Origin: Macrostomum lignano
Lineage: Eukaryota
Length of the DNA: 64,000 nt
Direction: 5' to 3'
NCBI GenBank assembly: GCA_002269645.1
Contig: NIVC01001564.1
Coordinates: forward strand, 62,001 to 126,000
Below the pieces are notes generated by a model. That model made no database searches and had not been told where the DNA came from. It was given only the letters and a program-made list of their open reading frames with translations. A program made the position numbers and the translations under genes. Numbering within the stretch: position 1 is the first letter of the stretch; each line of letters begins with the position of its first letter. Positions 6,726-64,000 of this stretch are shown here, piece by piece.

Positions 6726-6759
6726 CTGCGGCAGGGGAGTGTGAAATGTAGAGATCACG

Positions 6760-8512: not shown

Positions 8513-8558
8513 TCGTCAAAATCGCAGTAAACAAACAGCCCAATCCAGTCCAACTCAC

Positions 8559-10114: not shown

Positions 10115-11100
10115 CACTTTGGATCATATAGTATATATCCAAAAATTCGGGTGTGCATTGGCCTTACATTCCAAAAGTAGGCATGCACAATTGGCATATA
10201 TCACTGCTAAGAAAATAGTATGTCTGCACACCTAGTGTGCACTTTATAGAATCATGCAGACAGTGCTACTACTCACAACAAAATTATTTATGCGCACAAT
10301 TTAAAAAATTGTGCAGGTAGAAACCTAAGCTGATTGTTGTTAGTAAAATGAAGAAACAAATAAAGAAATTCAGTCTAGCATCCTTTTTTTCTTGTCAAAT
10401 TTTTTTCTCAGTCACAACTTTCAAAACTTTGAAATCCCTAAAAATTCTTTCCTAAATAAATCAAAGGATAAATCAAATGCTTAATGCTTGAAAATGAAGA
10501 AATTAGTATGAAAATTGTGTGTTTAATTTTAAGTGCAAACAAAGAACAGCCATAACTGACAAATGAAATATCAATGTATCATCATTTGAAGTGGAATTGA
10601 ACATTTTGTACTGCCAGATTGTCAACAATCCAAAGTCTGATTTGCATAGAAATTTAGGGTTTTGCACATTATTTGTATATTTGTGCAGAAAAATGCGTTG
10701 CTATGGCAACACTGCATACAGAAGAGTTATTGTAAAGTAAAAAAAGATGAAAGTTCATTTTTAAATATAAATTTTAAGCTTTTCCTCTCCGGGTTTTGTA
10801 AGCTTATAATGAAGTATTTAAAATTTTTTTGCATGCATCAAATTTTTACTAGAAATAATATCACTAAAAAAGCTGAAAAATTAACCAATTATCTGCCAAA
10901 AATGGTCTATTATGCAAATCAAAACAAGGCATTGATTGTCACAATGCATTGTAAAAAAAAGGTCATTTATTGTTGAAACACTGATATAGTTTTGAGAATG
11001 GGTGTGCACTCAATTTTTTGGAGTGCATTTGTAATTCTTTGATTTTTGTTTGGGCATGCAGCTAGCATGATCTGGACTATGGTCCAACAACAGTCAAAAT
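10115..11100 (+). repeat. Unclassified dispersed repeat, copy 1
   Basis: 10130-10254 and 10720-11090 align by eye with 40380-40870, which lacks the middle ~465 bp. Confidence 0.7.
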
Positions 11101-15812: not shown

Positions 15813-17258
15813 TCAGGCCAGGGTGGGGCAGAACAGTCGGCGCTCAACGTCTAGCAGCTCCTTCTCCCGTCCAGCGTCCAGCTCCACGACGGCCCAGGCG
15901 TCGCGAACGCGCCTCACAGCGTCTCTCAGTAGGTGCCGATGCTTCCACATGGTGAAGGCAACCACCAGCGCCTTGCCAACTGGTACAGAGCCGAAGCACA
16001 GCAGGACGCACTCACCTTTGTCCTCCGTGTGCTTCATCAGCCACAGGGCGGCTTCGACGTCTTCGCTAAACGATGCCAGCCGAAGGCAAGCAACGCGTTT
16101 TCCGGACAGCTGGAAGTGACAGAACTTCTCCACTGTTTTACTGTCCGTCAGCACCGACTGGTACAGGGACAGGGACTCCGCTGACGGGGTGAACTGCTGC
16201 TCGTGGATGAGGTAGATGAAGTCCTCGAACACGGTTGGCATCTGGCTGTTGCCGCCCAGGTACGTTGCCAAGTTGACGTCGCAGTCGAGAACGTGAATTG
16301 CCAGGCTGCAGGAGTTGCAGCAGAGTTTGAGGTGCTGCATCAGCTGGTCCCGCAGCAGCAGCAGCGCCTCCTGCGGGCAGCCAATGAGGTTTGACACTAG
16401 CACCAGGTACCGATAGGCTTTGCTGAGCCGCTCCAGCTGCAGGCTGTCCGCTTCCAGCAGATCGCGCACCGAGAAGGACACCAGATGAGTCAAGTCCAGC
16501 CTGGAGGTCTCGCTCTCGTCCCGACAGTCAACGATGCCGACAAGATGTCTCCGTTCGGCCATCAGATTGTGCAGCTGCTCGATGCTCAGCAGGACGTTCG
16601 CCGCCGCCGTTGCGCAGATGGTCTTCGTTGTCGATGTGGTGGTTTCCGATCTGGCTGACTCAGCATCTGGGAGGCCGTGGCAGTAAGGCGACGGCTCGAG
16701 CAGCTGGCCGAACACTCTGGGATTGTCGGGCAGCGGACAGTGGTGCTGACGGTACGCCCTAGTGCGGTCCATGAAGGACAGCCGCGGCGCGCCTCTGCTG
16801 AGCACGGCCGCCAGCTGGGACGCCAGTCCAGTTGCTGGGGACGCCGTTGCGGATGAGACCGAGTGTCCGGCCTCCGGATCCCCAGCCGGCGGAGTTCTGG
16901 CCGTGCCGACCTTTGCTGAGACGGCTTTGCGCGGCGCTGGAGGCGGCAGCGGCGTAGCGGCTGCTCCGGTTGGCGCCGCGGCCGAGGCGCAGCGAATCTG
17001 AACTGGCGCGGCGGCCAGGACCGCCGTCTGGGTCAGCTGAGTCATCTGGGTCAGCTGGGTCGGCTGCTGTGACGGCTGGTGAGCAGTCGTCAGGCTGGTC
17101 TGCTTCGGCTCCAGGATGTTTCGAGTGCACAAGTCGCGGACTGAGAGGACCTGCTGTTCGGGGGGGGGGGTGCATGGACTATCGAGATTGGGTCTCTGTG
17201 TCTCAACAGGTGGAATTTTCTTTCTAACAGAGTTGACTTTGTTTTTAACAGTTTCCAA
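15813..17258 (-). CDS. Large terminal exon: low-complexity N-part + rhodanese (CH2) domain + catalytically dead dual-specificity phosphatase domain (MK-STYX/STYXL1-like)
   Basis: LLSIEQLHNL...IVDCR (rhodanese). ECVLLCFGSVPVGKALVVAFTMWKHRHLLRDAVRRVR...KELLDVERRL fits the DSP C-terminal pattern but lacks HCx5R. The track 'M' is TTG, so the true start lies in an upstream exon. Confidence 0.65.
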   Translation of the reverse strand: METVKNKVNSVRKKIPPVETQRPNLDSPCTPPPEQQVLSVRDLCTRNILEPKQTSLTTAHQPSQQPTQLTQMTQLTQTAVLAAAPVQIRCASAAAPTGAAATPLPPPAPRKAVSAKVGTARTPPAGDPEAGHSVSSATASPATGLASQLAAVLSRGAPRLSFMDRTRAYRQHHCPLPDNPRVFGQLLEPSPYCHGLPDAESARSETTTSTTKTICATAAANVLLSIEQLHNLMAERRHLVGIVDCRDESETSRLDLTHLVSFSVRDLLEADSLQLERLSKAYRYLVLVSNLIGCPQEALLLLRDQLMQHLKLCCNSCSLAIHVLDCDVNLATYLGGNSQMPTVFEDFIYLIHEQQFTPSAESLSLYQSVLTDSKTVEKFCHFQLSGKRVACLRLASFSEDVEAALWLMKHTEDKGECVLLCFGSVPVGKALVVAFTMWKHRHLLRDAVRRVRDAWAVVELDAGREKELLDVERRLFCPTLA

Positions 17259-33649: not shown

Positions 33650-33821
33650 CTGTTGCAGGGGCGAGCGAACTTCGGCAGTGATGTTCAAAATCTCAAACTG
33701 GACTGGACTGTGTCTCAATCAAAATCTCATTTAAGATTCTGCAATCTCAAAATCTCAATATATAAGTTTGTGATTACTTGTAAAACAATCTAAAACATTT
33801 TGATACTGAGATACAATAAGA

Positions 33822-34635
33822 TACTGACAGGTAATAATCTCACCCATGAGATCGCAATGGGTAATAATCTCACCTTTAAGATTGACACAGGTAATAATCT
33901 CACCCATAAGATTGTGACAGGTAATAATGTCTTACCCATAAGATTGTGACAGGTAATAATCTCACTCATAAGATTGTGACAGGAAATAATCTCACCCATA
34001 AGATTGTGACAGGAAATAATCTCACTCATAAGATTGTGACAGGAAATAATCTCACCCATAAGATTGTGACAGGAAATAATCTCACCCATAAGATTGTGAC
34101 AGGAAATAATCTCACCCATGAGATCGCAATGGGTAATAATCTCACCCATAAGATTGTGACAGGTAATAATCTCACCCATAAGATTGTGACAGGAAATAAT
34201 CTCAGCCAGATGATTGTGACAGGAAATAATCTCAGCCAGATGATGGTGACAGGAAATAATCTCAATGAGATCGCAATGGGTAATAATCTCACCTTTAAGA
34301 TTGGGACAGGTATTGATAATAATCTCACCCATAAGATTGGGACAGGTATTGATAATAATCTCACCCATAAGATTGTGACAGGAAATAATCTCACCCATAA
34401 GATCGCAATGAGTAATAATCTCATTTTTAAGATTGAGACAGGTAATAATCTCACCTAAGAGATTGTGAAAGGTAATAATCTCACCCATAAGATTGTGACA
34501 GGAAATAATCTCAGCCAGATGATTGTGCGAGGTAATAATTAATGTCTCACCCATAAGATTGTGACAGGTAATAATCCCACCCATAAGATTGTGACAGGAA
34601 ATAATCTCACTCATAAGATTGTGACAGATAATAAT
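33822..34635. repeat. 30-nt minisatellite (GTGACAGGTAATAATCTCACCCATAAGATT)n in OMA1 intron 2
   Basis: Visible array. Confidence 0.95.
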
Positions 34636-34661
34636 CTTACAATTCTGAGACATAACAGTAC

Positions 34662-35221: not shown

Positions 35222-36085
35222 CAAAAATGAGTGCCTGCGGCGCTTAAATGAGTGCCAGCGGCGCTTAAATGAGTGCCAGCGGCGCTTAAATGAGTGCCAG
35301 CGGCGCTTAAATGAGTGCCAGCGGCGCTTAAATGAGTGCCAGCGGCGCTAAAATGAGTGCCTGCGGCGCTAAAATGAGTGCCTGCGGCGCCAAAATGAGT
35401 GCCTGTGGCGCTAAAATGAGTGCCTGCGGCGCTAAGATGAGTGCCTGCGGTGCTAAAATAAGTGTCTGCGAAGCTAAAATAAGTGTCTGCGAAGCTAAAA
35501 TGAGTGCCTGCGGCGCTAAAATGAGTGCCTGCGGCGCTTAAATGAGTGCCAGCGGCGCTTAAATGAGTGCCAGCGGCGCTTAAATGAGTGCCAGCGGCGC
35601 TTAAATGAGTGCCAGCGGCGCTAAAATGAGTGCCTGCGGCGCTAAAATGAGTGCCTGCGGCGCCAAAATGAGTGCCTGTGGCGCTAAAATGAGTGCCTGC
35701 GGCGCTAAAATAAGTGTCTGCGAAGCTAAAATGAGTGCCTGCGACGCTAAAATGAGTGCCTGCGGCGCTAAAATGAGTGCCTGCGGCGCTAAAATGAGTG
35801 CCTGCGGCGCTAAAATGAGTGCCTGCGGCGCTAAAATGAGTGCCAGCGGCGCTTAAATGAGTGCCTGCGGCGCTAAAATGAGTGCCTGCGGCGATAAAAT
35901 GAGTGTCTGCGAAGCTAAAATAAGTGTCTGCGAAGCTAAAATGAGTGCCTGCGGCGCTAAAATGAGTGCCTGCGGCGCTTAAATGAGTGCCAGCGGCGCT
36001 TAAATGAGTGCCAGCGGCGCTAAAATGAGTGCCTGTGGCGCTTCAATGAGTGCCCGTGGCACTAAAATAAGCGCTGACAACACCC
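35222..36085. repeat. 21-nt minisatellite (AAATGAGTGCCTGCGGCGCTA)n in OMA1 intron 1
   Basis: Visible array; explains the MSACGAK ORFs. Confidence 0.97.
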
Positions 36086-44170: not shown

Positions 44171-47100
44171 CTAGCAATCTTCGCCCCCCGATGGGGGACA
44201 TCTGGATAGAATCTCTGTTTTCTAAAGTAACAAAAAGACAGCCAAAAATCCTTCAAAAAGACAACAGACAAACTGCTCAAATGAAGTGCATTGCAAAAAG
44301 AAATCATCCCAAGACTGCAAGCATCCCCCAGATAGCAAGCATCCCCTAGATAGCAAGCATCCCCAAGATGGCAAGCATCCCCCAGATAGCAAGCATCCCC
44401 CAGATTGCAAGCATCCCCCAGATAGCAAGCATCCCCAAGATAGCAAGCATCCCTCAGATAGCAAGCATCCCCCAGATAGCAAGCATCCCCCAGATAGCAA
44501 GCATCCCCCAGATAGCAAGCATCCCCAGATAGCAAGCATCCCCCAGAAAGCAAGCATCCCTCAGATAGCAAGCATCCCCCAGATAGCAAGCATCCCCCAG
44601 ATAGCAAGCATCCCCCAGATAGCAAGCATCCCCCAGATAGCAAGCATCCCCCAGATAGCAAGCATCCCCCAGATAGCAAGCATCCCCCAGATAGCAAGCA
44701 TCCCCCAGATAGCAAGCATCCCCCAGATAGCAAGCATCCCCCAGATAGCAAGCATCCCCAAGATAGATAGCATCCCCAAATAGCAAGCATCCACCAGACA
44801 ATAAGTAGCTAGTGCGACAATTTCCTTAGCATTATAGCGGCTCCTTTAAAATTCGCTTACTTTTACGTTTGAAATTGTGTATCTTTTTATGTTTAACAGG
44901 GTGGCTCTTTTATGTTCTACGCTCGTACATGGTAACTCTTTTATGTTTGATACGGTGGCTTTTCAATGTCTGACATAGTGGCTCTTCTATGTTTGACATG
45001 GGGGCTCTTCTATGTTTGACATGGGGGCTCTTCTATGTTTGACATGGGGGCTCTTCTATGTTTGACATGGGGGCTCTTCTATGTTTGACAAAGTGGCTTT
45101 TTAATGTTCAAAAAGGTGGCTCTTTTATGTTTGACATGGTGGCTCTTTAATGTTTGACATGGTGGCTCTTTAATGTTTGACATGGTGGCTCTTTAATGTT
45201 AGACAAAGTAGCTCTTTAATGTTTGACATGGTGGCTCTTTAATGTTAGACAAAGTAGCTCTTTAATGTTTGACATGATGGCTCTTTAATGATAGACATGG
45301 TGGCTCTTTAATTTTTGACATGGTGGCTCTTTAATGTTGGACATGGTGGCTCTTTAATGTTAGACATGGTGGCTCTTTAATGTTCGACATAAAGTCACTT
45401 ATATGTTTGACATGATGGCTCTTTTATGTTTAACATGGTGGCTCTTTAATGTTTGACATGGTAGCTCTTTTATGTTCGACATGGTGGCTCTTTAATGTTC
45501 GACATGGTGGCTCTTTTATGTTCGACATGGTGTCGCTTCAATGTTTGACATGGAGTTACGTATATGTTTTACATGGTGGCTCTTTTATGTTCGACGTGGT
45601 GGCTCTTTAATGTTTGACATGGGGTCTCTTCAATGTTTGACATGGAGTTACGTATATGTTTGACATGGTGGCTCTTTAATGTTTTACATGGTGGCACTTT
45701 CATGTTTGACCTGGTGGCTCTTAAATGTTTGACATGGTGGCTCTGTAATGTTTGACATGGTGTCTCTTTAACGTTTGACATAGAGTCATGTATATGTTTG
45801 ACATGGTGGCTCTTAAATGTTTGACATGGTGGCTCTTTAATATTTGACATGGTGGCCCTTTTATGTTCGACATGGTGGCTCTTTAATGTTTGACATGGAG
45901 TCATATATATGTTTGACCTGGTGGCTCTTGTATTTTTAACACGTTGGCTCTTTAATGTTCGACATGGTGGCTCTTAAATGTCTAACATGGAGTCACGTAT
46001 ATGTTTGACATGGAGTCATGTATATGTCTGGTATGGTAGCTCTTTAATGTTTTACATGGAGTCACCTATATGTTTCACATGGTGGCTATTTTATGTTTGA
46101 CATGGTGCTTCTTAAATGTTCGACATGGTGGCTCTTTAATGTTTTACATGGTGGCACTTTCATGTTTGACCTGGTGGCTCTTTAATGTTTGACATGGTGG
46201 CTCTTTAATATTTGACATGGTGGCCCTTTTATGTTCGACATGGTGGCTCTTTAATGTTTGACATGGAGTCATGTATATGTTTGACCTGGTGGCTCTTTAA
46301 TGTTTGACATGGTGGCTCTTTAATGTTTTACATGGTGGCACTTTCATGTTTGACCTGGTGGCTCTTTAATGTTTGACATGGTGGCTCTTTAATATTTGAC
46401 ATGGTGGCCCTTTTATGTTCGACATGGTGGCTCTATAATGTTTGACATGGAGTCATGTATATGTTTGACCTGGTGGCACTTTCATGTTTGACCTGGTGGC
46501 TCTTTAATGTTTGACATGGTGGCTTTTTAATATTTGACATGGTGGCACTTTCATGTTTGACCTGGTGGGTCTTTAATGTTTGACATGGTACCTCTTTTAT
46601 GTTCGACATGGTGGCTCTTTAATGTTTTACATGGTGGCTCTTTAATGTTTGACATGGTGGCTCTTTAATGTTTGATAAGGTGGCTCTTTAATGTTTGACA
46701 TTGTGGCTCTTTAATATTTGACAAGGTGGCTCTTTAATGTTTAAAATGGTGGTTCTTTAATTTTCGAAATGGTGGCTGTTTTATGTTTGACATGGTGGCT
46801 CTTTAATGTTCGACATGGTGGCTCTTTAATGTTCTTAATGGTGTCTGTTTTATGTTTGACCTGGCGGCTCTTTAATGTTTGACATGGTAACTCTTTTAGG
46901 TTTGAAATGGTGTCTCTTTAATGTTTGCCATTGTGGCTCTTTAATGTTTGACATGGTGGCTTTTTAATGTTCGACATGGTGGCTCTTTTAGGTTTGAAAT
47001 GGTGGCTCTTTAATGCTTGACATTGTGGCTCATTAATGTTCGACATGGTGGCTCTTTAATGTTTGACATGGTAACTCTTGTATGTTTGATATGGTGGCTC

Positions 47101-47787
47101 TTTTACGTTCGACATGGTGGCTCTTTAATGTTTGACATTGTGGCTCTTTAATGTTTGAAATGGTGGCTCTTTAATGTTTCGACATGGTGGCTCTTTAATG
47201 TTGAGAATTTTGTGTTTTTTAACGTGTTTTAATAAAAAAAACATTTTTCACCACTAAGATTCGAACCAAGGTCGCTACATTAGCATTCCAGTCTGTTTGC
47301 ATCCGGCTATCTCTTTTCAATTGAAGAACATGACTTGTGGCCCTTATAATTCAATACTTATAGCAAGTCGGTTAGAGTAAAAGTTATGACATAATCAATT
47401 TCTCAGTCAGCCAGTATCAGTCTCAATTCAAGTTAGCAATATGGTTACGCAATTTCAATGAAGTCTTGTGTGCGTTTCTGTGGCACTGTTTTCACCTTGT
47501 TGTGATGCAATCTTTATCACAATCGTAATTCAGCCAGTCAGTTTTTTCTCTAGCATTCTTACAATGCATTTCAAGTCAAAAATTTGGCTTGACCTTTGCA
47601 AAAAAGCATGTTTTTCGAATATTTAATCCCTTTAACATTGAGCAATTTCTTAGCCAAGATACATGTACCGTCCCAGGAACATTTCTGATCGAATGGTGCA
47701 AGTTTGAAGAAAATCGGTTGAGCCATTTTTTCTGAAATCTATCGCATAGCTAGTTAGTTACAGACATTTCATTTTTAGTATATAGGA
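44171..47787 (-). mobile_element. Non-autonomous Helitron, unit 1 (minisatellite-filled)
   Basis: Minus strand starts TC (47787) and ends GTCCCCCATCGGGGGGC hairpin + 8 nt + CTAG|T (44171); body of 18-nt and 23-nt arrays. Confidence 0.85.
44925..47200. repeat. 23-nt minisatellite (ATGTTTGACATGGTGGCTCTTTA)n in Helitron unit 1 (second array 48270-52010)
   Basis: Visible; explains the MSNIKEPPCQTLKSHHVKH ORFs. Confidence 0.97.
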
Positions 47788-50700
47788 CTAGCAATCTTCG
47801 CCCCCCCGATGGGGGACATCTGGTTAGAATCCTTGTTCTTTACAAATAACAAATAGACAGCGAACTAAAGCCTTCAAAAAACAACAACAGACATTCCCTC
47901 TAAAAACAAAACATCCCAAGACAGCAAGCATCCTCAGACAGCATTCAAGCATCGATCCCAAAATAGCAAGCATCCCCCAGATCGCAAGCATCCCCCCCGA
48001 TAGCAAGCAACCCCAGATAGCAAGCATCCCCCAGACCCCAGATAGCAAGCATTCCCCCAGACCCCAGATAGTAAGCATCCCCCAGATAGCAAGCATCCCC
48101 CAGATCGCAAGCATCCCCCAGATCGCAAGCATCCCCCAGATAGCAAGCACCCCAAATAGTAAGCATCCACCATACAATAAGTAAAGTAGCTAGTGCTACA
48201 ATTTCCTTAGCTCTATAGTGGCTCCTTTAAAATTGGCATGACGCTTACTTTTACGTTTGAAATTGTGTAAATTTTATGTTTGACATGGTGGCTCTTTAAT
48301 GTTTGACATGGTGGCTTTTTAATGTTTGACATGGTGGCTCTTTAATGTTTGACATGGTGGCTCTTTTATGTTCTACATGGTGGCTCTCTTATGTTTGATT
48401 CAGGGTTTTTTTAATGTCTGACATGGTGTCTCTTTATTGTTTGACATGGTGGCGTTTTACTGTTTGACATTATGGCTCTTTAATTTTTGACATGGTGGCT
48501 CTTTTATGTTTGAAATGGTGGCTCTTTATGTTAGACATGGTGGCTCTTTAATGTTCGACATGGTGGCTCTTTAATGTTAGACATGATGGCTCTTTAATGT
48601 TTGACATTGCGGCTCTTTTAATGTTTGACATGGTGGCTCTTTTATGTTGGACATGGTGGCTCTTTTTTGCTTGACATGGTGGCTCTTTACTGTTTGACAT
48701 GGTGGCTCTTTAATGTTCGAAATGGTGGCTCTTTAATGTTTGACATGATGGCTCTTTTATGTTTGACATGGTGGCTCTTTTATGTTGGACATAGTGGTTC
48801 TTTAATGTTCGACATTGGTTGCTCTTTTATGTTCAAAAAGGTGGCTTTTTAATGTTAGACATGGTGGCTCTTTAATGTTCGACATGGTGGCTCTTTAATG
48901 TTAGACATGGTGGCTCTTTATTGTTCGACATGATGGCTCTTTAATGTTTGACATTGCGGCTCTTTAATGTTTGACATGGTGGCTCCTTTATGTTTGACAT
49001 GGTGGCTCTTTTTTGATTGACATGGTGGCTCCTTTATGTTTGACATGATGGCTCTTTTATGTTTGACATGGTGGCTCTTTAATGTTTTACGTGGTGGCTC
49101 TTTAATGTTCTTCATGGTAGCTCTTTTATGTTTGACATGGAGTCACGAATATACTTGACATGGTGACTCGTTATTGTTCGACATGGTGGCTCTTCTATGT
49201 TTGACATGGTAGCACTTTAATGTTTGACATGCTGGCTCTATAATGTTTGACATGGAGTCACATATATGTTGGACATGGTGGCTCTTTAATGTTCGACATG
49301 GTGGCTCTTTAATGTTTGACATGGTGGCTCTTCAATGTTTGACATGATGGCTCTTCAATGTTTGACATTGCGGCTCTTTAATGTTTGACATGGTGGCTCC
49401 TTTATGTTTGACATGGTGGCTGTTTTAAGTTTGACATGGTGGCTCTTTTTTGATTGACATGGTGGCTCCTTTATGTTTGACATGATGGCTCTTTTATATT
49501 TGACATGGTGGCTCTTTTATGTTTGACATGGTGGCTGTTTTATGTTTGACATGGTGGCTCTTCTATGTTTGACATGGTGGCTCTTTAATGTTCTACATGG
49601 TGGCTCTCTTATGTTTGATTCGGGTTTTTTTTAATGTCTGACATGGTGTCCCTTTATTGTTTGACATAGTGGCTCTTTTATGTTTGACATGATGGCTCTT
49701 TAATGTTCGACATGGTGGCTCTTTAATGTTTGACATGGTGGCTCTTTAATGTTTGACCTGGTGGCACCTTAATGTAATGATGGCTCTTTAATGTTTGAAA
49801 TGGTGGCTCTTTAATGTTCGACATGGTGGCTCCTTTATGTTTAACATGGTGCTCTTAAATGTTTGACATCGTGGCTCTTTAATGTTTGACATGGTGGCTC
49901 TCTAGTGTTTCACATGGAGTCACGTCTGTGTTTGACATGGAGTCACGTATATATTTGGCATGGAGTCACGTATATGCTTTTCATGGTGGCTCTTTTATGT
50001 TTGACATGGTGGGTCTTTAATGTTTGACATGGTGGCTCTTTAATTTTTGACATGATGGCTCTTTAATGTTCGACATGATGGCTGTTTAATGTTTGTTATG
50101 TAGTCATGTGTATATGTTTTACATGGTGGCTCTTTTATGTGTGACATGGAGTCACGTATATATTTGACATGGAGTCACATATATGTTTGACATGATGGCT
50201 CTTTTATGTTTGACATGGTGGCTCTTTTATGTTTGACATGGTGGCTGTTTTATGTTTGACATGGTGGCTCTTCTATGTTTGACATGGTGGCTCCTTAATG
50301 TTCTACATGGTGGCTCTCTTATGTTTGATTCGGGTTTTTTTTAATGTCTGACATGGTGTCCCTTTATTGTTTGACATAGTGGCTCTTTTATGTTTGACAT
50401 GATGGCTCTTTAATGTTCGACATGGTGGCTCTTTAATGTTTGACATGGTGGCTCTTTAATGTTTGACCTGGTGGCACCTTAATGTAATGATGGCTCTTTA
50501 ATGTTTGAAATGGTGGCTCTTTAATGTTCGACATGGTGGCTCCTTTATGTTTAACATGGTGCTCTTAAATGTTTGACATCGTGGCTCTTTAATGTTTGAC
50601 ATGGTGGCTCTCTAGTGTTTCACATGGAGTCACGTCTGTGTTTGACATGGAGTCACGTATATATTTGGCATGGAGTCACGTATATGCTTTTCATGGTGGC

Positions 50701-52604
50701 TCTTTTATGTTTGACATGGTGGGTCTTTAATGTTTGACATGGTGGCTCTTTAATTTTTGACATGATGGCTCTTTAATGTTCGACATGATGGCTGTTTAAT
50801 GTTTGTTATGTAGTCATGTGTATATGTTTTACATGGTGGCTCTTTTATGTGTGACATGGAGTCACGTATATATTTGACATGGAGTCACATATATGTTTGA
50901 CATGGTGGCTCTTTAGTGTTCGATATGGTGGCTGTTTAATGTTTGACATAGTGGCTATTTTATGTTTGACATAGTGGCTCTTTAATGTCTGACATGGTGG
51001 CTCTTTAATGTTTGACATGGTGGCTCTTTTATGTTCGACATGGTGGCTCTTTAATGTACGACATAATGGCTCGTTTATTTTCGACATGGTGGCTCTTTAG
51101 TGTTTGACATGGCTTTTTAATGTTTGACATGGTGGCTCTTTTATGCTTGACATGGTGGCTCTTTAACGTTCGACATGGTGGCTCTTTAATGTTTGACATG
51201 GTGGCTCTTTTATGCTTGACATGGTGGCTCTTTAATGTTTGACATAAAGTCACTTATACATGGTGTCTCTTAAATATTAGACATGGTGGCTCGTTTAGGT
51301 TTGACATGTTGGCTCTTTTATGTTTGACATGGTGGCTCTTTTATGTTCGACATGGTGGCTCTTTTTTGTTCTACATGGTAACTCTTTTATGTTTGATACG
51401 GTGGCTTTTTAATATCTGACATGGTGGCTCATCTATGTTTGACATTGTGGCTCTTCTGTGTTTGACATGGTGGCTGTTTAATGTTTGACATGGTGGCTCT
51501 TTAATGTACGACATAATGGCTCGTTTAAGTTGGACATGGTGGCTTTTTAATGTTTGACATGGTAGCTCTGTTATGTTCGACATGGTGGCTCTTTTAGGTT
51601 TGACATGGTGGCTCTTAAATGTTTCACATGGTGGCTCTTAAATGTCTTACATGGTGGCTCTTTTATGTTTGACAATGTGGCTGTTTAATGTTTTACATGG
51701 CGGCTCTTTTATGTTCGACATGGTGGCTCTTTAATGTTTGACATGCTAGCTCTTTAATGTTCGACATAGTGGCTCTTTTATGTTTGGCATGGTGGCTATT
51801 TAATGTTCTTCATGGTGGCTCTTTTACGTTTGACATGGTGGGTCTTTAATGTTCGACGTGGTGGCTCTTTAATTTTCGAAATGGTGACTCTTTTATGTTT
51901 CACATGGTGGCTCTTTAATGTTTGACATAGAGTGACGTATATGTTTTACATGGTGCCCATGTAATGTTTGACATGGTGCCTCTTTTATGTTTGACATTGT
52001 GCTTTTTTATGTTTAGCAGTTTCGTGTTTTCAAGGTGTTTTAATAAAAAAATCTTTTTGCAGCACTAAGATTGGAACCCAGGTCGCTGCATTAGCAGTCC
52101 AGTCTGTTCGCATCTATGCTATCTCTTTTCAATTGGCGAACATGATTTGTGGCCCTTATAATTCAATGCTTACAGCAAGTTGGTTAGAGTAAAAAGTTAT
52201 GACATAATCAATTTCTTAGTCAGCCAGTATCAGTGTCAATTTAAGTTAGCAATATTGTTACGCAATTTCAATCAAGTTGTGTGTGCATTTCTTTGGCACT
52301 GTTTTCAACTTGTTGTGATGCAATATTTATCAGAATTGAAATTCAGTCAGTCAGTTTTTTCTCTAGCATTCTTACAATGCATTTCAGATCGAAAGAGCCG
52401 CTTGACCTTTGCGAAAAAGCCTGTTTTTCGAATATTTAATCCCTTTAATATTGAGCAATTTTTTAGCCAAGATGCATGTACCGTCCCAGGAAAATTTCTG
52501 ATCGAATGGTGCAAGTTTGAAGAAAATCGGTTGAGCCATTTTTTCTGAAATCTATCGCATACCTACCCACATACATACAGACAACTCATTTTTAGTATAT
52601 AGGA
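47788..52604 (-). mobile_element. Non-autonomous Helitron, unit 2 (head-to-tail with unit 1)
   Basis: A|TCCTATATAC 5' end at 52604; same hairpin and CTAG at 47788; CTAG|TC junction with unit 1; ~710-bp internal duplication (49621 vs 50331). Confidence 0.85.
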
Positions 52605-52638: not shown

Positions 52639-54792
52639 CTAAGGTTCGTTGCAAAAGTCATAAGGGAGCAGCGCCTTTTCATCACCACTTGCACGTCCAC
52701 GTCCACCTCCGCGTCCTCGTCCACCTCGGCGTCCACCTCCGCGTCCTCGTCCACCTCGGCGTCCACGTCCACCTCCACGCCCACATCCGAGTCCACTCGT
52801 TGCAGTATCAGGAGCTGGCGCCTCCGGCAGCATCAGCGGCGCCCACACTTTCATCTCGTGGCATGGGCAGGCTACTGCTGTACCAGGGCACATGCAGGAC
52901 AGCTGACGGTAAGTGATCGGCCCACCATCAGTCCTTGAGACGTCGTGCATCGACTTCGAGCCTGGCATGCCGCAGAGGTCCTCACCTACGAAGGTGATGA
53001 TGCTTGTGAAATAGTTCATGTCCTCTGGCTGAACCAACCATGTGAGTATGTGCAGAGGGCTACCCGATCTGACGGCTTCCATAACATCCTGAGGTGTTAC
53101 AACGTCCTGCCGGCTAGCCACGACTTCATCGCAGCGGCGTTTGATAGCCGCTCCAACTCCATCCGCAGCACCCTTGCCGTGTCCGGCCTCTGTGTAGATC
53201 CAACGCCAGCTTGACACCCTCATGATCTTCATCAGGCGGTCGAATAAGAAAACCATCTTGCGATTTCTATACTGGCTGGATGGCGAATCAGAGACGATGA
53301 CGATCTGGTCCAGTTGGCTAAAGGCGTCCTTATCGACATCGTGCTTCTCCTTAAAGTGGCGAAGGACTGGTTGTAGATGAGCGGCGATGGCCTCCGCCGT
53401 CTTACTCCTCTCTCCTGATACCGTTGCGAATGAGCAAGGTTGATGTCCAGCCATGTAGGCCACGCCTTGATGAAGCACCACCTGATCCTTGTCGCCAAAG
53501 TGCGCCGCCTGTACCTCTTTGTGGTACTTCGCCGTATAGTTTTCGGAGAAGTCTATGTGCAACAGGAGCTGTCCCGGCTGCAGAGTATCCTTAACCTGGC
53601 GGATTGCACGATACTGGTTCCGCATCCGCATAAAGTGGCCCGCAAAGTCGACTAGTTGCACCATCAGCATGCTGATAGCCGTCTTGCATGATGCCGTCTC
53701 TTTGACCACATCCAAGCCGCTGCGTCCATCTGTCCGAGGCTTCCAAACGCGGTACACAACCTGTGGCTCAGCCTCAGCTGTCTCCGTGACTACAAATGAC
53801 TTGCGACGGCACTCGTCGCATTTGCGCAGCAGGCAGTCAGCGTATTCCATGTCGCAGACCATTTCATTCAACACTTTAGTAATGTGGTGGCTGTGAAGAA
53901 GTCCAGCAATGTGCATGCCTTTGATTAAGGACTCCGTGTTAGTGCACTTTATGCACATACACATGTCTCGGTCACACAGACGAGCCCTCTTGACATACCA
54001 TGGCTTCCAGCGGTTAAATGTTGCCCGGCTGATCTTCACACCAGGATACTCCCAAAGGAACTTTGCATGGAGCAGGGAGACTGAGCTCAGGAGATAACGC
54101 TTCTGCTTTGTCTCCTTCTCCTCGCCAAATCTCTTGGAGATGCAATCCTTCCGGGAGGAGGTGGCCCGCGAGTTTTCGTCCTGGCAAAAGTACTCCTGGA
54201 CGACGCTCACAAGCAGATTTATCTTCGGCGCTCTCGGCTGCTTCAAGATCTTCGCGGAGGCGCCAAAGAAGGCCATGACGGCCTTCCGTCCTGCCTCGTG
54301 GGCGTTTAGACAGGCAGCCTTGATTACTCGCCGGGTGTTATTGAACCGTCTGACTGACTGCAGCGCTCTCTTCACATGGCTAGCTATGTTGGTGAAAGTC
54401 TGAAGCCGGCAACTTTTTGCCGCCAATTCCTTATTCGCGCGGTGAAGTTTCACTCGCAGGCAGGTTTTGCTTGTCTTGCGCTGCTTGGCAGCAGTCTCAA
54501 GCAGGTGCACCCTGGCCTTTAGCTTGGCATTCTCCCGCTTGAACGCCGCTGCCGATCTTGCCAAGGATCGCTGGGGGATCTCTGCCGAAGTGCTGGACCC
54601 TGCCTTGTCCTTGCGATTGCCTTTGTCCCTATACTTCTGCTGTTGCCGCCGCATGTGCTCTAGGTAGCTACTGTGGGAGCCAAAATTTGTTTTAATATAT
54701 TTTTTCCTCTTTTCACGCCGCTTTTGTCGTTCAGTCGGCTTGAACGGCATTGCTTGAAACAGATGGTGGGAATTTTTGTGTTTTGCAGTCAT
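52639..54792 (-). CDS. Sola2-type DDD transposase, ~717 aa, uninterrupted, with Gly/Arg-rich tail
   Basis: CMCIKC and CLLRKCDEC Cys motifs, HIDFSENY, VSDSPSSQYRN, HGKGAADGVGAAIKR; first ATG 54792 (the track start is TTG). Confidence 0.85.
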   Translation of the reverse strand: MTAKHKNSHHLFQAMPFKPTERQKRREKRKKYIKTNFGSHSSYLEHMRRQQQKYRDKGNRKDKAGSSTSAEIPQRSLARSAAAFKRENAKLKARVHLLETAAKQRKTSKTCLRVKLHRANKELAAKSCRLQTFTNIASHVKRALQSVRRFNNTRRVIKAACLNAHEAGRKAVMAFFGASAKILKQPRAPKINLLVSVVQEYFCQDENSRATSSRKDCISKRFGEEKETKQKRYLLSSVSLLHAKFLWEYPGVKISRATFNRWKPWYVKRARLCDRDMCMCIKCTNTESLIKGMHIAGLLHSHHITKVLNEMVCDMEYADCLLRKCDECRRKSFVVTETAEAEPQVVYRVWKPRTDGRSGLDVVKETASCKTAISMLMVQLVDFAGHFMRMRNQYRAIRQVKDTLQPGQLLLHIDFSENYTAKYHKEVQAAHFGDKDQVVLHQGVAYMAGHQPCSFATVSGERSKTAEAIAAHLQPVLRHFKEKHDVDKDAFSQLDQIVIVSDSPSSQYRNRKMVFLFDRLMKIMRVSSWRWIYTEAGHGKGAADGVGAAIKRRCDEVVASRQDVVTPQDVMEAVRSGSPLHILTWLVQPEDMNYFTSIITFVGEDLCGMPGSKSMHDVSRTDGGPITYRQLSCMCPGTAVACPCHEMKVWAPLMLPEAPAPDTATSGLGCGRGGGRGRRGGRGRGGGRRGGRGRGGGRGRASGDEKALLPYDFCNEP

Positions 54793-55324
54793 TTCAAGCA
54801 ATTACAGCTGCAGTCTAATTTGGACAATCATGTGATTGGGAATCACTTAGATGTTACTAGGGGCAACAAACCCAGCAATGTCACTATTAGATGCCTCAAC
54901 TGCCAGTAGGACCTAGTGGAAAAGCTTCAAAAATGATATCCAAATTTTGCAGTCTATTTTGTGCTAAATCTGCATAGAGTCTAAACTGTATCTTTCATTT
55001 AAATAATGCCAATAGCTACTTGCTTATTGGGACACAAAATTCAGGATTTTTTGCAAGAAACTGTACATTTCAAAGTAAAATTTTCCAAATGGCCAAAACT
55101 TTTTTTGATGGACCAATTTCTACAAATAAAGCCACTTGATTCATATTCTTTCAGTCATTGAGATCTAATATCTAATTTAAAACATCAATTTTAATTTCAA
55201 GTTTAAAATGCTACTGAATCCCTTACTCATAAATTACAGTTTGTATGTATTGCCTGGTTTCTAAATTGTTAACATATTTTGTGTGGCTTATATGCAATAT
55301 TTTCTTTTAAAAAATTAATGCTCC

Positions 55325-55683: not shown

Positions 55684-56350
55684 TCTCCACTTTACTCCTT
55701 TTTTTGGTCATTATCTTATTCCAGTGTTGCAAAACTGTGGTCCCAACGTTTATTGGCTTGTGTCTGTCTTAGTAGCAATTAATTGTATAAAAAAATATTG
55801 CAACAACTGTGGTGCACTAATCCATATAAAAACATCACAAATACAAAGATCACATTATAAGGCACAAAAAAACGCCAAAAGACGCCATATGCATTGCTTT
55901 CACCTAAAAAACTAGCAATATATTTGTACAATTCAACTGCTAGTAACTAGAACAGTGATGCGTTTAAGTGATGAAAGATTGTGTTTAAGTCAAGGAACAA
56001 ATCACTAAGCAGTCATTCTTTAATAAGAAGCAAATTCTAATGTTCTTTTCTTCCTTCCTGTGCAAAATAGTTTATTTCTGATGTTTCTTTCCCATTGAAT
56101 TTTTTCACAAAACATGACACCGTCTTAGCGTTACATCGAAGAAATGGAAATATTAAATTGATAAAATGACTCAGTAGTCAGTTGCTTTGACAACCGTACC
56201 AATTTCACTGTTTCGAATGATAAATAAAGTACTTTTCTTTCAACAGCTACGTTTACCCTGTTGCTTGTTTTGCATGAAAGGCTGGTTCAGGGTCGAAAAT
56301 TTTTTTTCTTGTTTTATCGCGTAATTCCTGATTTTGAGAACGACCCTGGG

Positions 56351-56681
56351 ACGGTTGGACGGTCAACTCGGGCTACTGGGTCGTGAGTCACAACGTAGCT
56401 TAGCGTCTTAACACTTAATAACAGCATTCATTAGCATTAAATTTTAGCATTAGAGCCTTAGGATTATCCAATTCAGTATTCTATTTCATTAGATCATTGG
56501 TGTTAATAAAAGCGCCCAACTAAGTAGTCACAGTTGCAGTCAGTCGTTCGGGTGCTCGCTTAATATAAGCATATTGAACTTAACTACTTAGTCTTAACTT
56601 ATTATTGCTCACTTCGATTTCAAATCTGATTGCCATACTTGTTATCGACTTTATTATTTTTAGACAAAATAATTGGCGACC
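56351..56681 (+). mobile_element. Possible LTR remnant (with 41615-41661) that was the Sola2 target
   Basis: AATAAA near 56505, ...AGACA at 56666 followed by PBS-like TGGCGACC 56674-56681. Weak. Confidence 0.3.
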
Positions 56682-57252
56682 ACACCTAGTTTTCTATATC
56701 CTACTACACAGTACACATACGAGCCCAATATTTTGAAAATTCAAACAAGACTCAAACCAAACCTCTTTCTTTACAGTAAGACCGGTCGTTTTTTCTTGTA
56801 AAACGCCACAACCGTTAAAATATCGCCTTTTTAATACAAAACAACAAACAAGAATGTTTTTCAATTAAAAATTGCTTTAATTTGCAGTGCACATGTATAC
56901 GTACATTCGCTAGTTCTACATGTTACATTTCCTTAGCAGATCACTACGCTACTATGAAGAAAAAGTAAAGAAAATAAGGTTACAAGTATGTCACTACTAT
57001 AACTCGTGTTTATTAGAACGCGGCTTCCCTTCTACATGTACAGTATATATAGGAAGTAGATATACACATAAATACTTAATTAATATTTTTTGGCTTGTAT
57101 ATACATGTATATGTAATCAGTTGTAAATATCGTGATCTGATAATAGCCGTATAAACGAAAAAACAAATTGGTCCAGCTCAGTGCCAGCGCAGGCCGTCTA
57201 TAGAAAAGAATTGAACGAAAGACATGAAAACATCTACATTATTCGTTGTTCT

Positions 57253-58755
57253 TCAAATCTCAGAAACCCTTTTTGCAGCCACAGCAGCCACCGCCTCTTT
57301 CAGCGCTTCGTCCGATAGCAGCCGCCAGTCGCCGCAGTCCAGCAGCCAACGGCAAGCGGTGATGTGCCCGACCGACAGAAGCGGCAGCAGCCGCGCCGCC
57401 TCCACAGCGTCTGCTGGACAGCGGGCCGTCAGCGCGTCGCTAAACGCCTCCGCCATCGCTGCCGTCTCCAAGGACGCCCCCAGCGAGTCCCCGCAGAGGT
57501 CGGCGTCCCATCCGGTCACCGCGGCCGGGCCCTCTCTGATGCAGCTCGCCGCCGCGCAGTCGTCGCCGACGTCGAGTCGCGACTGCCAGCCGTCGTCGTC
57601 ACCCGCGTCGTCGTCGTCGGCGTGGAGGGCACGGAGCTGCCCGGTGCGCCGCAGCCACCGCGCCACGCGCCAAGCGCCGCTGCGCACAACGTCGGCCGCG
57701 TCAACGTCGCAGGCGCCCTCCCGCGGTAGCCGCAGCTCCACCGCTAACAGCGACAGCAGGCGAACCGCAGCGAGCGAGTCCAACCGAGCCGCTGCCTGCA
57801 CCGGCGTCCGCCAGCCGCCGTCCGGCATCGTCAGGGCGGCCCGCAGCCCCGACACCGACGCCCTGCCGTCTCGCAGCAGCCGCAGTAGCCGGGCGACCAC
57901 CGCCGCAGCCACCGACGGCTCGGCGGCAGCGCAGTAGTGCAGCAGGTTGCGTCCTCCGCTGTCGTAGTGCCGGTGCGCCTGCGACGGATCCAGCGACAGC
58001 AGCCGCTCGGCGAGGTCGGCGCGGCCTCTCAGAACCGACAGCATCAGCGCCGACTGCAGGGCGCCGTTCCGCAGCTCCGTCACGGGGAGGCGGAGCCGCT
58101 CGCTCGGGATGGGGTGCCGCGAGTCAGCTGTTTCCATGGCAACCGGTGTTGATGAGGCTGTTTCCATAGCAACCGGTTCTGCTGAGACTGTTTCCATTTC
58201 AACCGGTTCTGCTGAGGCTGTTTCCATAGCAACCGGGTCTTCTGTTGGTGCTGTTTCCTTAGCTACCCGATCTGTTGGCGTCGTTTCATTAATAGCATTC
58301 GAAGCCGGATCTGTTGTTGCTGTTTTCGTGGCAACCAAATGATGTGTTGATTCTGTTTTCATGGCAATTGGCTGTGTTGTTGCTGTTTCCTCAGCAACCG
58401 GATTTCTTACAAAAGTTTCAATGGCAACGAAGCCTTTAGACATTGTTTCCCCTGCAACTGGGACTGTTGAAATGGAATTCACGGGGGCAGCTTCCATTTG
58501 AAGTGACACAAATCGTTTAGACTTGAGACGTGGCGTAGCATTTGATGCGCTCGAAGACTTTCTCTTCGATCTGATTGCATTGTTGCTTTGCTGCTGTTGC
58601 TGAAAGTCAAAAGCTTTCGAAGCACCTTCGGTGGTTAGTCGATGCTGAATCCTGAGTGCTCGAGTTTTCTTCAACTCTGCAACATCGTCGATGACCTTGA
58701 GTACTCCGACTCCCATGCTTGTTTCAGAATTTTTAGCAATTTTAGAATCCAGCAA
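57253..58755 (-). CDS. Ankyrin-repeat protein with N-terminal VAMET repeats (large exon; start uncertain, ATG 58716 or an upstream exon)
   Basis: QSALMLSVLRG...LAERLL, GRNLLHYCA and RTPVQAAAR ankyrin-like motifs; 500-codon open frame with GC-rich coding bias. Confidence 0.75.
   Translation of the reverse strand: MLDSKIAKNSETSMGVGVLKVIDDVAELKKTRALRIQHRLTTEGASKAFDFQQQQQSNNAIRSKRKSSSASNATPRLKSKRFVSLQMEAAPVNSISTVPVAGETMSKGFVAIETFVRNPVAEETATTQPIAMKTESTHHLVATKTATTDPASNAINETTPTDRVAKETAPTEDPVAMETASAEPVEMETVSAEPVAMETASSTPVAMETADSRHPIPSERLRLPVTELRNGALQSALMLSVLRGRADLAERLLSLDPSQAHRHYDSGGRNLLHYCAAAEPSVAAAVVARLLRLLRDGRASVSGLRAALTMPDGGWRTPVQAAARLDSLAAVRLLSLLAVELRLPREGACDVDAADVVRSGAWRVARWLRRTGQLRALHADDDDAGDDDGWQSRLDVGDDCAAASCIREGPAAVTGWDADLCGDSLGASLETAAMAEAFSDALTARCPADAVEAARLLPLLSVGHITACRWLLDCGDWRLLSDEALKEAVAAVAAKRVSEI
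58130..58458. promoter_or_regulatory. Phased array of ~11 RFX X-box-like motifs inside coding sequence
   Basis: GTTTCCATGGCAAC 58130, GTTTCCATAGCAAC 58160 and 58220, plus weaker copies at 58190, 58253, 58322, 58355, 58385, 58415, 58445. Confidence 0.5.
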
Positions 58756-59334
58756 TTTTATCAGTGTCTTCGTTTAAGGAGTGCTGATTGCGTTCTTTTG
58801 ATGCGAGTATTTATACATTCAAGGTCGATGTAATAATGCAAAAAGAAAGAATCCAGTTTAGTCAGCAGCCAGTTTGGAAAATTCTTTGCCACGGAATTTC
58901 CGTGGTTATTTTCTCTCATTTTTTGAACGCGCACAACTACGAGTACGTTTATTTGCGTATGAGTGTCGTTTGATACTCGTACATGTATGCTATTTTTAGC
59001 TGCTGTACATTATTGCAGGGAATCCATTTTTAGACCTGCAAAGCGGCTGACTAATGTGTTGCGAGCTCTGAGTGATAGCTCGCACTAAATTGCACCTAAT
59101 TTTGGGGGTCAATAAGTTTTTTTTAATTTTATTTCAGACACAACTAATTGCAAAATCATGTAATTTGAAGAAAAAATTACCTAATTGATATAATAATTTA
59201 TATTCCACTTACATTACAGGAAATCACCTAGTTAGTTGCATATAGATGCTTGTACACCAAGAAGTGAATAATAATTTGTGCCCGCAAAATATTCTACACG
59301 AAAAATCTCAAGGCAATCTCAATAAATCAATTGA

Positions 59335-59595
59335 CTTCAGAAGTCACCGGCAATCATCCAGTAAATTCACAAATCAGTGCCAATCATCCAGTGACTTCAC
59401 AAGTCAGTGCCAATCATCCAGTGACTTCACAAATCAGCGGATACTGGCAATCATCAAGTGACTTTTCAAGTCACCGGCAATCATCAAGTGACTTTTCAAG
59501 TCACCGGCAATCATCAAGTGACTTTTCAAGTCACCGGCAATCATCAAGTGACTTTTCAAGTCACCGGCAATCATCAAGTGACTTTTCAGATCACT
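59335..59595. repeat. 30-nt minisatellite with internal AAGTCAC/GTGACTT palindrome
   Basis: Visible contiguous units with no unique spacers. Confidence 0.93.
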
Positions 59596-59611
59596 GGAAT
59601 CTACTATAAAA

Positions 59612-60000
59612 AGCTTGATGAACTTTGGCGTCTCACAGGCGTTGGTTTAAAGAATTGCCTCAAGATCGCAAAGGCCGTCACCTGGGCGATGCTGCTCTAT
59701 GAGTGCGAGAGCTGGACTCTGGGGAAGAAAAGTGTGGAGACACTCAAAAGCGTTTGAAATAAAATGTTATGTCAGAAGAATGCTAAGGGTTTCATGGAAA
59801 GAGAAAAAGACAATGCCTGGGTTTGGAGGAAAGTGAAGGAGGTTTTGGGAAAGGAACCAGAATCTGTGGTGGAGATCATTAAGCGGAGAAACCTCAAATA
59901 TTAACGGACATCGGAGGAGATTTGAGGAATATTCGAGGAAGGAAGCCATGGCAAATGTCTGCACTTCTCAATGAGAAATGGAAGGTGAAAGAAGAAGAAT
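59612..60000 (+). mobile_element. Degraded RTE-clade LINE RT 3' fragment
   Basis: LLYECESWTL...LKAFEIKCYVRRMLRVSWKEKKT with frameshifts. Confidence 0.8.
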
Positions 60001-61039: not shown

Positions 61040-62139
61040 CTACTGGTAAAGATCAGGCGAGTAGAAAGCTGCGTACATACCGGGGGAAATTCTGGTGCCA
61101 GCTGCTGTTTGTGGACTTGACTTCTTTTTACACACACACAGAGTTAGTAAGAACTGTTCCAGTGTTGTACAGGTGACAGTAGACGCCGCCTGAAGAAAAT
61201 GTTGGGGTAGTGCTGGTACACTCCGTTCAGATTTATAAACGTGCAATACCCAAACCACCATCCAGCTGAGTACTGATGAGAGCAGCTGCCAGAACCGAAG
61301 CCGTCATTGTCGGAGTCCAGAGTGCTGAATTGCTTGTTGTTCGGAGACAATTGCAGCTCAGTCCGCTGTCCGACACGCTCGACCTGCTCGCGTCCAGAGG
61401 TCCCATCGAGCACCTGTACTTGTCGCTCGCTGGACCAACAGAGAACGGAGCATTCTCAGCCCAGTACCAGGTGCCGTTCCAGTCGCTGAACTCCCAGCGG
61501 ACTCTCCACACTCCAGTGGCGGTGAGCTGGTGGAGCTGCTCCAGTCCCATCCAGTAGTTGAGACTCTCGCCCTGACCGAATCCGCTCGCGTAGTCCGCCC
61601 AGTTTCGGTTGAAGCTGACGGAGCCGTCGACTCTGTGCTGGAAGGTCGTCCAGCACTTCACCGGCTTTCTCATCTGCAATTTGGTGCTGCATTTTGTTTA
61701 CGCATATTGATGCGGTGCTGCATTTCGTGCACGCATATTGATGCGGTGCTGCATTTCGTGCACGCATATTGATGCGGTGCTGCATTTCATGCACGCATAT
61801 TGATGCGGTGCTGCATTTCGTGCACGCATATTGATGCGGTGCTGCATTTTCATGCACGCATATTGATGCGGTGCTGCAAAGTGCAGTGCAGAAGCCACAA
61901 AGCAAAGCCCAGCTCACTCACCCACAGTTGAGACAGGCTGCGGCGTCTATCGCTCCCCGATCGCAGGCCAGCAGCGAGCAGGAGCCCGAGGCCGCGTTCT
62001 TAGCAATCATCGTACAGTGAATATCGCTGATGGCCAGCTTCATCGCCAGCACTCGGTACTCGGCGAGGTCACCTCACTGGAGCTCCCAGCCGGAGTCTGC
62101 GGCCACAGCAGTCACCATGACAGCAGAGAATGAATGCAT
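61040..62139 (-). pseudogene. Fibrinogen C-terminal domain (FReD) gene, apparently disrupted
   Basis: WTTFQHRVDGSVSFNRNWADYASGFG...YWMGLEQLHQLT and FSTLDSDND...GWWFGYC...NLNGVY lie in different frames (shift at about 61340). The upstream exon 61922-62139 has an in-frame TGA at 62074-62076. Confidence 0.75.
61682..61878. repeat. 31-nt minisatellite in the FReD intron
   Basis: (TGCACGCATATTGATGCGGTGCTGCATTTCG)n. Confidence 0.95.
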
Positions 62140-62640: not shown

Positions 62641-63546
62641 CTAGCAGTTCTCTGCAGTTGCTAAGGAACTGCGTGCATGAAAAGAATTGATTTTGAATGA
62701 TCAATTTGAGAAATTGACGAGCGAACGAACAGAGACACAAACTCCCCTTGAGCAGCCTTGAGAAATGTCTTGAACGAGTCTAACAGTCTAGATGGAGCTG
62801 AGATCAGTCTCCTTTTTGGTGTTTCAATTTTTTTTACGAACAAACACAGGGACCTAATTGTCTTAGCATACAATATTTTTGCTAGAATAAATATATAACA
62901 AAGGAGACTTTCTAACTCCAGATTTTATACCGAGAGCACCTTGAATCGCATACAACAGTTTGGGGCAGTAGCTAATGCCCTTTTATGCCAATTAACCAAA
63001 GTGGATTTTGATTCCAAAGTGGAGGAAGCGGTTTATAAATTGACTGCAGGTGATACAGGTACGTGTGACCTTAGCCCAGCAGGATATTGTGTATAAACAG
63101 CCTTACCGGATCAAAGCAGCTGTTGTTGCAGTTTATTAATTAAATAGGCCAAAGTTCCTGATGATCCGAGATGTGTTTTTGTTCAATAAATACTGCTGAA
63201 TAATAAATAAATGAATAGGCAAACTTCTACATGCCAGACAAGCGCAAAATATGAAACATTTTTGGAATATGCAAAAAGCACAGTAATGAATCATGCAAAA
63301 TTGCTGTTTTCTTTACATGAAACTCGATTGCTTATCTGCCTTAACGACTGCCCCACCGATTGCCCCACCGGTTGCCCCACTAGTTGCTCCACCGGTTGTC
63401 CTACTAGTTGCTTCACCAGTTTTCCCACTAGTTGCTTTATCGGTTGTCCCACTAGTTGCCCCAACGGTTGAAATATTTCAAGCTAAAATTAAGCCGTTAA
63501 ATATTTAGCCAGTCAGTCAGTCACAGGCTTCAGTGTGTGCTGCTCT

Positions 63547-64000
63547 ATGGCAATTTGCCATGGAAACAGTCCCAGCAAAACCGGTTGCTATGGAAACAGC
63601 GCCAAAAACAAACTCGGTTGCCATGGAAACAGCGCCAACAACAAACTCGGTTGCCATGGAAACAGACTCATCAGCACCGGTTGCCATTGAAACAGCCGAC
63701 TCGCGGCACCCCATCCCCAGCGATCGGCTCCGCCTCCCCGTGACGGAGCTGCGGAACGGCGCCCTGCAGTCGGCGCTGATGCTATCAGTGTTGAGTGGCC
63801 GTGCCGACCTCGCCGAGCGGCTGCTGTCGCTGGATCCGTCGCAGGTGCAGCGGTACTACGACAGCGGAGGGCGCAACCTGAGCCATCAGTGGCTGCGGCG
63901 GTGGTCGCCCGGCTACTGCGGCTGCTACAAGACAGCCGGACATTGGTGGCGGGGCTGCGGGCCTCCCTGACGATGCCTGACGGCGGCTGGCGAACGCCGG
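63547..64000 (+). pseudogene. Inverted partial paralog of the ankyrin gene with a 22-bp frameshifting deletion; runs off the window end
   Basis: Collinear with 57830-58260 (reverse complement); CTGCACTACTGCGCTGCCGCCG is missing after GGRNL at about 63880. Confidence 0.85.

Follow-up and report, generated by a model that had tools for sequence, protein, structure and literature searches.

Binding sites for RFX transcription factors, called X-boxes, have been described by consensus sequences of different breadth, including the strict form RTNRCC N1-3 RGYAAC and the restricted (Drosophila) form GYTRYY N1-3 RRHRAC (PMC2375033). Validated X-boxes are mostly located upstream of genes in promoter-proximal positions, and searches for them have used windows of 500 bp to 3 kb upstream (PMC2375033, PMC3245922). 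The presence of an X-box does not by itself predict control by RFX (PMC2375033). The closest described site to the one considered here lies in the promoter of human DCDC2. An EMSA probe with this X-box, GTTGCTATGGAAAC, is supershifted with RFX1 and RFX2, and the X-box is required for promoter activity in that its mutation lowers this activity (PMC5024701).

X-boxes can also be exonic. One report (PMC3245922) cites X-boxes in exon 1 of MAP1A that are bound by RFX1 and RFX3, with repression by two such sites, and the same report describes expression in C. elegans as tunable by multiple X-boxes. More generally, a transcription-factor word embedded in coding sequence falls under the concept of duons, or exonic enhancers (eExons), which are defined by occupancy, enhancer activity or synonymous constraint (PMC4745165).

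Within the window (the whole stretch of DNA analyzed, 64,000 nt), an array of short coding repeats resembles each of these systems in part. Like the duons, it carries a transcription-factor word in coding sequence, but the synonymous sites of the motif show no constraint beyond the local background. With MAP1A, the array shares the occurrence of more than one X-box within an exon, for which the first exon of MAP1A is a precedent. However, MAP1A has two sites whose function was shown experimentally, whereas the putative sites here form a tandem array that derives from a coding repeat. The DCDC2 element, which is identical to three of the repeat units over 19 nt, is a single, upstream, non-coding promoter element conserved in mammals, whereas the copies here lie in tandem inside an ORF. 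In our assessment, the array is probably a coding minisatellite of the ordinary kind, with a founder unit that is an X-box by chance.

Table 1. Positions of the repeat arrays and the sequences that adjoin them
Feature	Position	Strand	Description
500-codon ORF	57253-58755	-	First ATG 58716; stop 57253-57255
N-terminal non-repeat segment	58462-58716	-	85 codons, GC3 0.45; without counterpart in the paralogue
Coding array	58126-58461	-	11 units in head-to-tail order, each 30, 33 or 39 nt
Four youngest units	58126-58245	-	Adjoin the ankyrin part; 14-mer exact at 58130, 58160, 58220; GCT -> GAA at 58190
Ankyrin-like C-terminal part	57256-58125	-	290 codons, GC 0.73, GC3 0.85
Paralogous array	63554-63697	+	5 units of 30/33 nt; 14-mer exact at 63584, 63617, 63650; two with one mismatch
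Paralogous GC-rich part	63698-64000	+	89-91% identity to 57801-58125; continues past the window end

A decapeptide repeat and its inverted paralogue

The ORF opens with a non-repeat segment, continues with the decapeptide array and ends in a GC-rich, helical ankyrin-like part (Table 1). The unit consensus, CCG GTT GCY ATG GAA ACA GCC TCA GCA GAA, encodes PVAMETASAE, and the 14-mer GTTGCYATGGAAAC comprises the V-A-M-E codons together with positions 1 and 2 of the Thr codon. An initial annotation of this locus had listed about 11 motifs at 30-33 bp spacing, three of them exact. Counted as codons there are indeed 11 units, and GTTRCYATGGAAAC is present exactly at three minus-strand positions (58130, 58160 and 58220), with seven further sites at one or two mismatches. 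However, one spacing is 39 nt, the full series being 30, 30, 30, 33, 39, 30, 33, 30, 30 and 30 nt. Only the four youngest units are called as an array by TRF (58127-58244, period 30, 3.9 copies, 86% matches); the remaining seven are older and more degenerate. Across the whole window, GTTRCYATGGAAAC has 20 matches compared to 1.6 expected. We reject this enrichment as a sign of selection, given that tandem duplication and the paralogue account for the excess.

The array has the properties of a coding tandem repeat, as had been proposed. Its units are arranged head to tail, all unit lengths are divisible by 3 (30, 33 and 39 nt here, 30 and 33 nt in the paralogue), and a single frame is kept open. 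Specifically, the frame that encodes VAMET is the sole stop-free frame of six across the N-terminal segment, the array and the GC-rich part, and it spans 197 codons of 47% GC sequence in addition to the GC-rich part.

A second, inverted array, absent from the initial annotation, is present on the plus strand. The GC-rich part that follows it carries a 22-nt deletion relative to the first copy just after position 63884, which shifts the frame and eliminates an LLHYCAAA ankyrin-like motif, and no homology to the first copy was detected upstream of 63555. Given the frameshifting deletion and the lack of shared upstream sequence, this truncated paralogue is probably a pseudogene. In the 60 colinear ankyrin-part codons that precede the deletion, the two copies differ by seven synonymous and five nonsynonymous changes (dN/dS roughly 0.25), a ratio that suggests past purifying selection and speaks for a real gene.

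This interpretation needs to be weighed against the possibility that the ORF is spurious or dead and the minisatellite within it non-coding, the open frame being an accident of GC richness and repetition. A word-indexed search of 5.8 billion clustered proteins, with the whole ORF and the array alone as queries, found no homologue, as would be expected of a spurious ORF. An exhaustive phmmer search of 1.8 billion representatives yielded seven weak matches and no orthologue; the matches are generic ankyrin proteins plus two unrelated decapeptide-repeat proteins. In Pfam, the ORF matches Ank_2 only weakly (E 3.7e-4; 21.4 bits, under the 27.3 cut-off), and a search with the array alone gave nothing meaningful, with no match to PF25296 ("Decapeptide repeat region"). 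In addition, structure prediction is of low confidence, GC-rich DNA yields long ORFs, as exemplified by one of 237 aa that overlaps on the plus strand, and several minisatellites nearby generate long spurious ORFs (e.g., 59331-59757). Against this, none of the other five frames stays open across both the 47% GC sequence and the GC-rich part, the indels between units are all multiples of 3, and the paralogues show an excess of synonymous changes. Moreover, the best phmmer match, a 2129-aa ankyrin protein (E 8e-14 summed over 12 stretches), is aligned in a manner that follows the ankyrin helix-loop pattern. We therefore regard a spurious ORF as unlikely.

A single-sequence AlphaFold2 model (mean pLDDT 43) places a long N-terminal helix at residues 3-49 (pLDDT 60-70) and helices downstream of the array at low confidence. 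In this low-confidence model the array is without secondary structure, and the repeat probably forms a disordered Thr/Ala/Glu/Pro-rich linker.

Several other features of the region are worth recording. The two copies belong to an inverted segmental duplication (57801-58184 and 63639-64000, 89-91% identity), and the 5' truncation of its right-hand copy falls within the array. The duplication flanks about 5.4 kb that contain several minisatellites and fibrinogen-C-domain exons (61144-61679, minus strand; Pfam E 9e-23). A 12-nt array at 63349-63470 (TGCCCCACCGGT, ~10 copies) immediately precedes the decapeptide array of the paralogue and repeats ACCGGTTGC, which is the junction sequence of the 30-nt unit, as though this unit had given rise to a sub-repeat. 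A GC-rich ORF of 481 codons elsewhere in the window (15813-17258, minus strand; GC3 0.75) is without a match in Pfam or the PDB and could be another lineage-restricted gene. A search of the window with Rfam gave one tRNA-like match. The CpG observed/expected ratio in AT-rich non-coding sequence (56200-57200 and 58756-59300) is ~1.1-1.2, which argues against a vertebrate-type globally methylated genome. Together with the fibrinogen-C exon, a CpG ratio near 1 would point to an animal outside the vertebrates.

Correspondence to known X-boxes

None of the 11 units in the first array, and none of the five in the second, fits the strict X-box consensus, because position 11 is A rather than Y. The restricted consensus is matched by five of the 11. 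The relaxed C. elegans X-box consensus is GTHNYYATRRNAAC, and three of the 11 units conform to it. Of the five paralogous units, three match these broader forms.

Of greater significance is the identity to a validated site. The 19-nt sequence CGGTTGCTATGGAAACAGC, consisting of GTTGCTATGGAAAC and its flanks in the DCDC2 X-box, is present at 58157-58175, 58217-58235 and 63582-63600. The units at 58160, 58220 and 63584 thus equal the core of the DCDC2 EMSA probe, for which binding is known with human RFX1 and RFX2, and the GCC variant of the unit is one base off. The initial annotation had classed the motif among the palindromes bound by RFX, and this identity bears it out. Because they are identical to a validated X-box, intact units are predicted to be RFX-competent, and we would with good confidence expect RFX to bind them in vitro. 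That the array is occupied by RFX in some cell type is a more tentative proposition, and we consider it rather unlikely.

These findings provide arguments for viewing the repeat as a selected duon, which would be kept at least partly for its RFX sites and would act on the ankyrin-like gene, or on one nearby, as an RFX-responsive exonic enhancer or silencer. The agreement with DCDC2 over the 14-mer and its flanks is more than resemblance, nearly half of the units in the first array fit the restricted consensus, two X-boxes in an exon repress MAP1A, and several X-boxes can tune expression in C. elegans. However, X-boxes easily arise from this peptide, since V-A-M-E-T can be encoded in 32 synonymous ways, of which 4-6 fit the relaxed consensuses. 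The array is also situated 256-590 nt downstream of the first ATG, inside the ORF, and not in the promoter-proximal position upstream of a start codon that is typical of validated X-boxes. Furthermore, the pseudogene-like paralogue has equally good motifs, as recent duplication alone predicts.

Two X-boxes that satisfy the strict consensus are present in the window, both outside the arrays. The first, at 10697-10710 (GTTGCTATGGCAAC; minus strand GTTGCCATAGCAAC), is a near-perfect palindrome found in single copy within AT-rich (30% GC) non-coding sequence. Judged on its letters, this site surpasses every repeat unit as a candidate for RFX binding. The second, GTTGCCCCTAGTAAC, at 54853-54867 on the minus strand, is located ~50 nt upstream of a 720-codon ORF (52639-54801, minus strand) that has a transposon-like look with an Arg/Gly-rich tail and matches no Pfam family.

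Divergence, codon usage and spacing of the units

If the motif were maintained as DNA, its synonymous sites should be constrained, and the initial annotation had pointed to spacers that diverge while the 14-mer persists. By alignment column this description is accurate, with a mean pairwise identity of 0.76 for the 14-mer and 0.44 for the flanks, although such columns pool units whose spacers no longer align. The contrast is much weaker among the most closely related units. When changes were counted along the edges of a minimum spanning tree of all 16 units from both arrays, substitutions affected 24 of 210 motif site-edges (11.4%) and 38 of 231 spacer site-edges (16.5%; Fisher p=0.13), a 0.69-fold trend toward motif conservation. 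With 62 substitutions among 16 related units, the power of this comparison is low. The spacers also contain every indel, and each indel is a multiple of 3.

The changes within the motif are seven synonymous and 17 nonsynonymous. The 14-mer contains about 2.3 synonymous and 11.7 nonsynonymous sites, which gives ~35 synonymous site-edges and, by hand arithmetic, rates per site-edge of ~0.20 (synonymous) and ~0.10 (nonsynonymous) compared to 0.165 for the spacer, again at low power. Among the copies in the window, therefore, synonymous sites of the motif evolve as if neutral, contrary to what a DNA-level role would demand. Because the synonymous rate is no lower than that of the spacer and the nonsynonymous rate is about half of it, the pattern suggests mild constraint on the protein rather than on the DNA, such that the peptide core V-A-x-[E/K]-T appears to be under mild purifying selection. 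The better conservation of the motif columns, which might otherwise favour a duon, can be viewed in the same way.

Individual positions agree with this assessment. The right half-site has been hit by five changes at G9 and G10, and older units have lost the X-box consensus. The AAAC at positions 11-14 is invariant in 16 of 16 units, including the third position of the GAA/AAA codon, but this is uninformative because only ~0.8 synonymous changes would be expected there and changes at the other three positions are nonsynonymous.

Codon usage had been offered as a further sign of maintenance, in that the motif uses GTT and GAA and the ankyrin part favours G/C-ending codons. The contrast itself is literally true (GC3 0.29 for the array and 0.85 for the GC-rich part, with 0.45 in the N-terminal segment and 0.6-0.85 in other exons of the window). 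However, the spacer codons are equally A/T-ending. Array-wide, spacers included, ACA accounts for 17 of 21 Thr codons and GAA for 14 of 15 Glu codons, and TCA and GCA are also used. Because A/T-ending codons fill the whole array, the choice of GTT and GAA is not specific to the motif. Moreover, if the array is one amplified founder unit, these codons represent one draw and not 11 independent choices.

The transition between these compositions is abrupt. GC3 rises from ~0.3 to 0.85-1.0 within ~20 codons at 58100-58160, and likewise at 63680-63720. The step coincides exactly with the end of the last repeat unit, and the GC-rich block (0.73) stops at the stop codon. Because the step is common to both paralogues, it would be older than the duplication. 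Candidate explanations are that a young AT-rich repeat was grafted onto an older exon, or that GC-biased conversion occurred between the inverted copies.

The proposed phasing at about three helical turns does not hold either. Spacings of 30, 33 and 39 nt amount to 2.86, 3.14 and 3.71 turns, and the sites therefore drift round the helix. All unit lengths are multiples of 3 because the frame is kept, and hence the period is set by codons and not by helical turns. Several other minisatellites in the window have a 30-nt period as well.

With synonymous sites unconstrained, the consensus gone from older units, no strict match among the 11, an A/T codon bias that spans the entire array and a period out of helical phase, the claim that the repeat is maintained as a homotypic exonic enhancer is unsupported, and we judge such maintenance to be very improbable. 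The broader idea of a selected duon fares little better and appears highly unlikely. There is likewise only a slim chance that the decapeptide repeat is at the same time a functional homotypic cluster of RFX sites. We give least credence to the idea that repeat turnover, through conversion or unequal exchange centred on GTTGC...GAAAC, has kept the DNA core with no selection on protein or binding: it would explain why core columns are better kept at all three codon positions, and the re-use of ACCGGTTGC in the 12-nt array might suggest a slippage-prone stretch, but it lacks direct evidence, the nearest-neighbour rates are not significantly different, and protein-level constraint on V-A-x-E-T gives the same pattern.

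Proposed amplification of a founder unit and its implications

A comparison from outside the window is instructive for the coding minisatellite that we favour. Among the phmmer matches is a PVALETAGLL repeat in a USP22 gene model of the sturgeon Acipenser ruthenus. As with the array described here, it consists of 30-nt units with a P-V-A-x-E-T-A core that were amplified head to tail, and both arrays display copy numbers that differ between copies and a gradient of age along the array. In contrast, the sturgeon DNA unit (GTGGCGCTGGAGAC / CCCGTGGCGCTGGAGACAGCGGGGCTTCTC) uses G/C-ending codons (GTG GCG CTG GAG) and contains no X-box, and the similarity is at the peptide level and does not establish common descent. 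That PVALETAGLL is encoded without an X-box indicates that the peptide does not require one. A dispersed family of X-box minisatellites was also considered, and was rejected because the sturgeon unit is without an X-box. The 839-aa sturgeon model (SCEB01215736.1, 47320-47740) includes the translated 30-nt minisatellite as PVALETAGLL x 13, together with a second N-terminal repeat (DLTPPRVNR...). Because other USP22 orthologues are without both repeats, their inclusion is probably a gene-model artefact.

We propose that a 30-nt founder unit was amplified, by slippage or unequal exchange, in an ankyrin-like gene that is lineage-restricted (an orphan), within its 5' half. The product would be a Thr/Ala/Glu/Pro-rich, probably disordered decapeptide linker that joins an N-terminal helix to the helical ankyrin-like part. 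Units on the ankyrin side would be young and near identical, and distal units would be older, with drift through point changes and through indels (3 or 9 nt) that preserve the frame. By accident, the V-A-M-E-T codons of the founder would have spelled GTTGCYATGGAAAC, an RFX-competent X-box, and amplification would then have multiplied this accident. Intact units may be bound by RFX in vitro, and perhaps in cells, and yet the period, the codon usage and the decay pattern can all be explained with no regulatory selection.

Minisatellites are exceptionally dense here, with 56 TRF rows in the window. The large arrays include those at 44927-52014 (23 nt x 307), 6754-8514 (24 nt x 74), 35224-36068 (21 nt x 40) and 33816-34637 (30 nt x 27). 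With dozens of arrays in a single window, some units genome-wide would be expected to spell the site of a known factor.

If the repeat did act through RFX, an orphan ankyrin-like gene would be under RFX control, possibly ciliary, from within its own coding sequence, and the copy number of the repeat would tune both protein length and transcriptional input. The locus would permit a cheap and clean test of a duon, because its units equal a validated RFX site and recoding of the sturgeon type abolishes the X-box without loss of the core peptide. One synonymous recoding is GTGGCGATGGAGAC. On the reading that we prefer, the array is a cautionary case in which an amplified coding unit can mimic a designed, phased cluster of transcription-factor sites, and in which the apparent design in codon choice, period and motif persistence derives from inheritance of a founder unit, frame keeping and mild constraint on the peptide.
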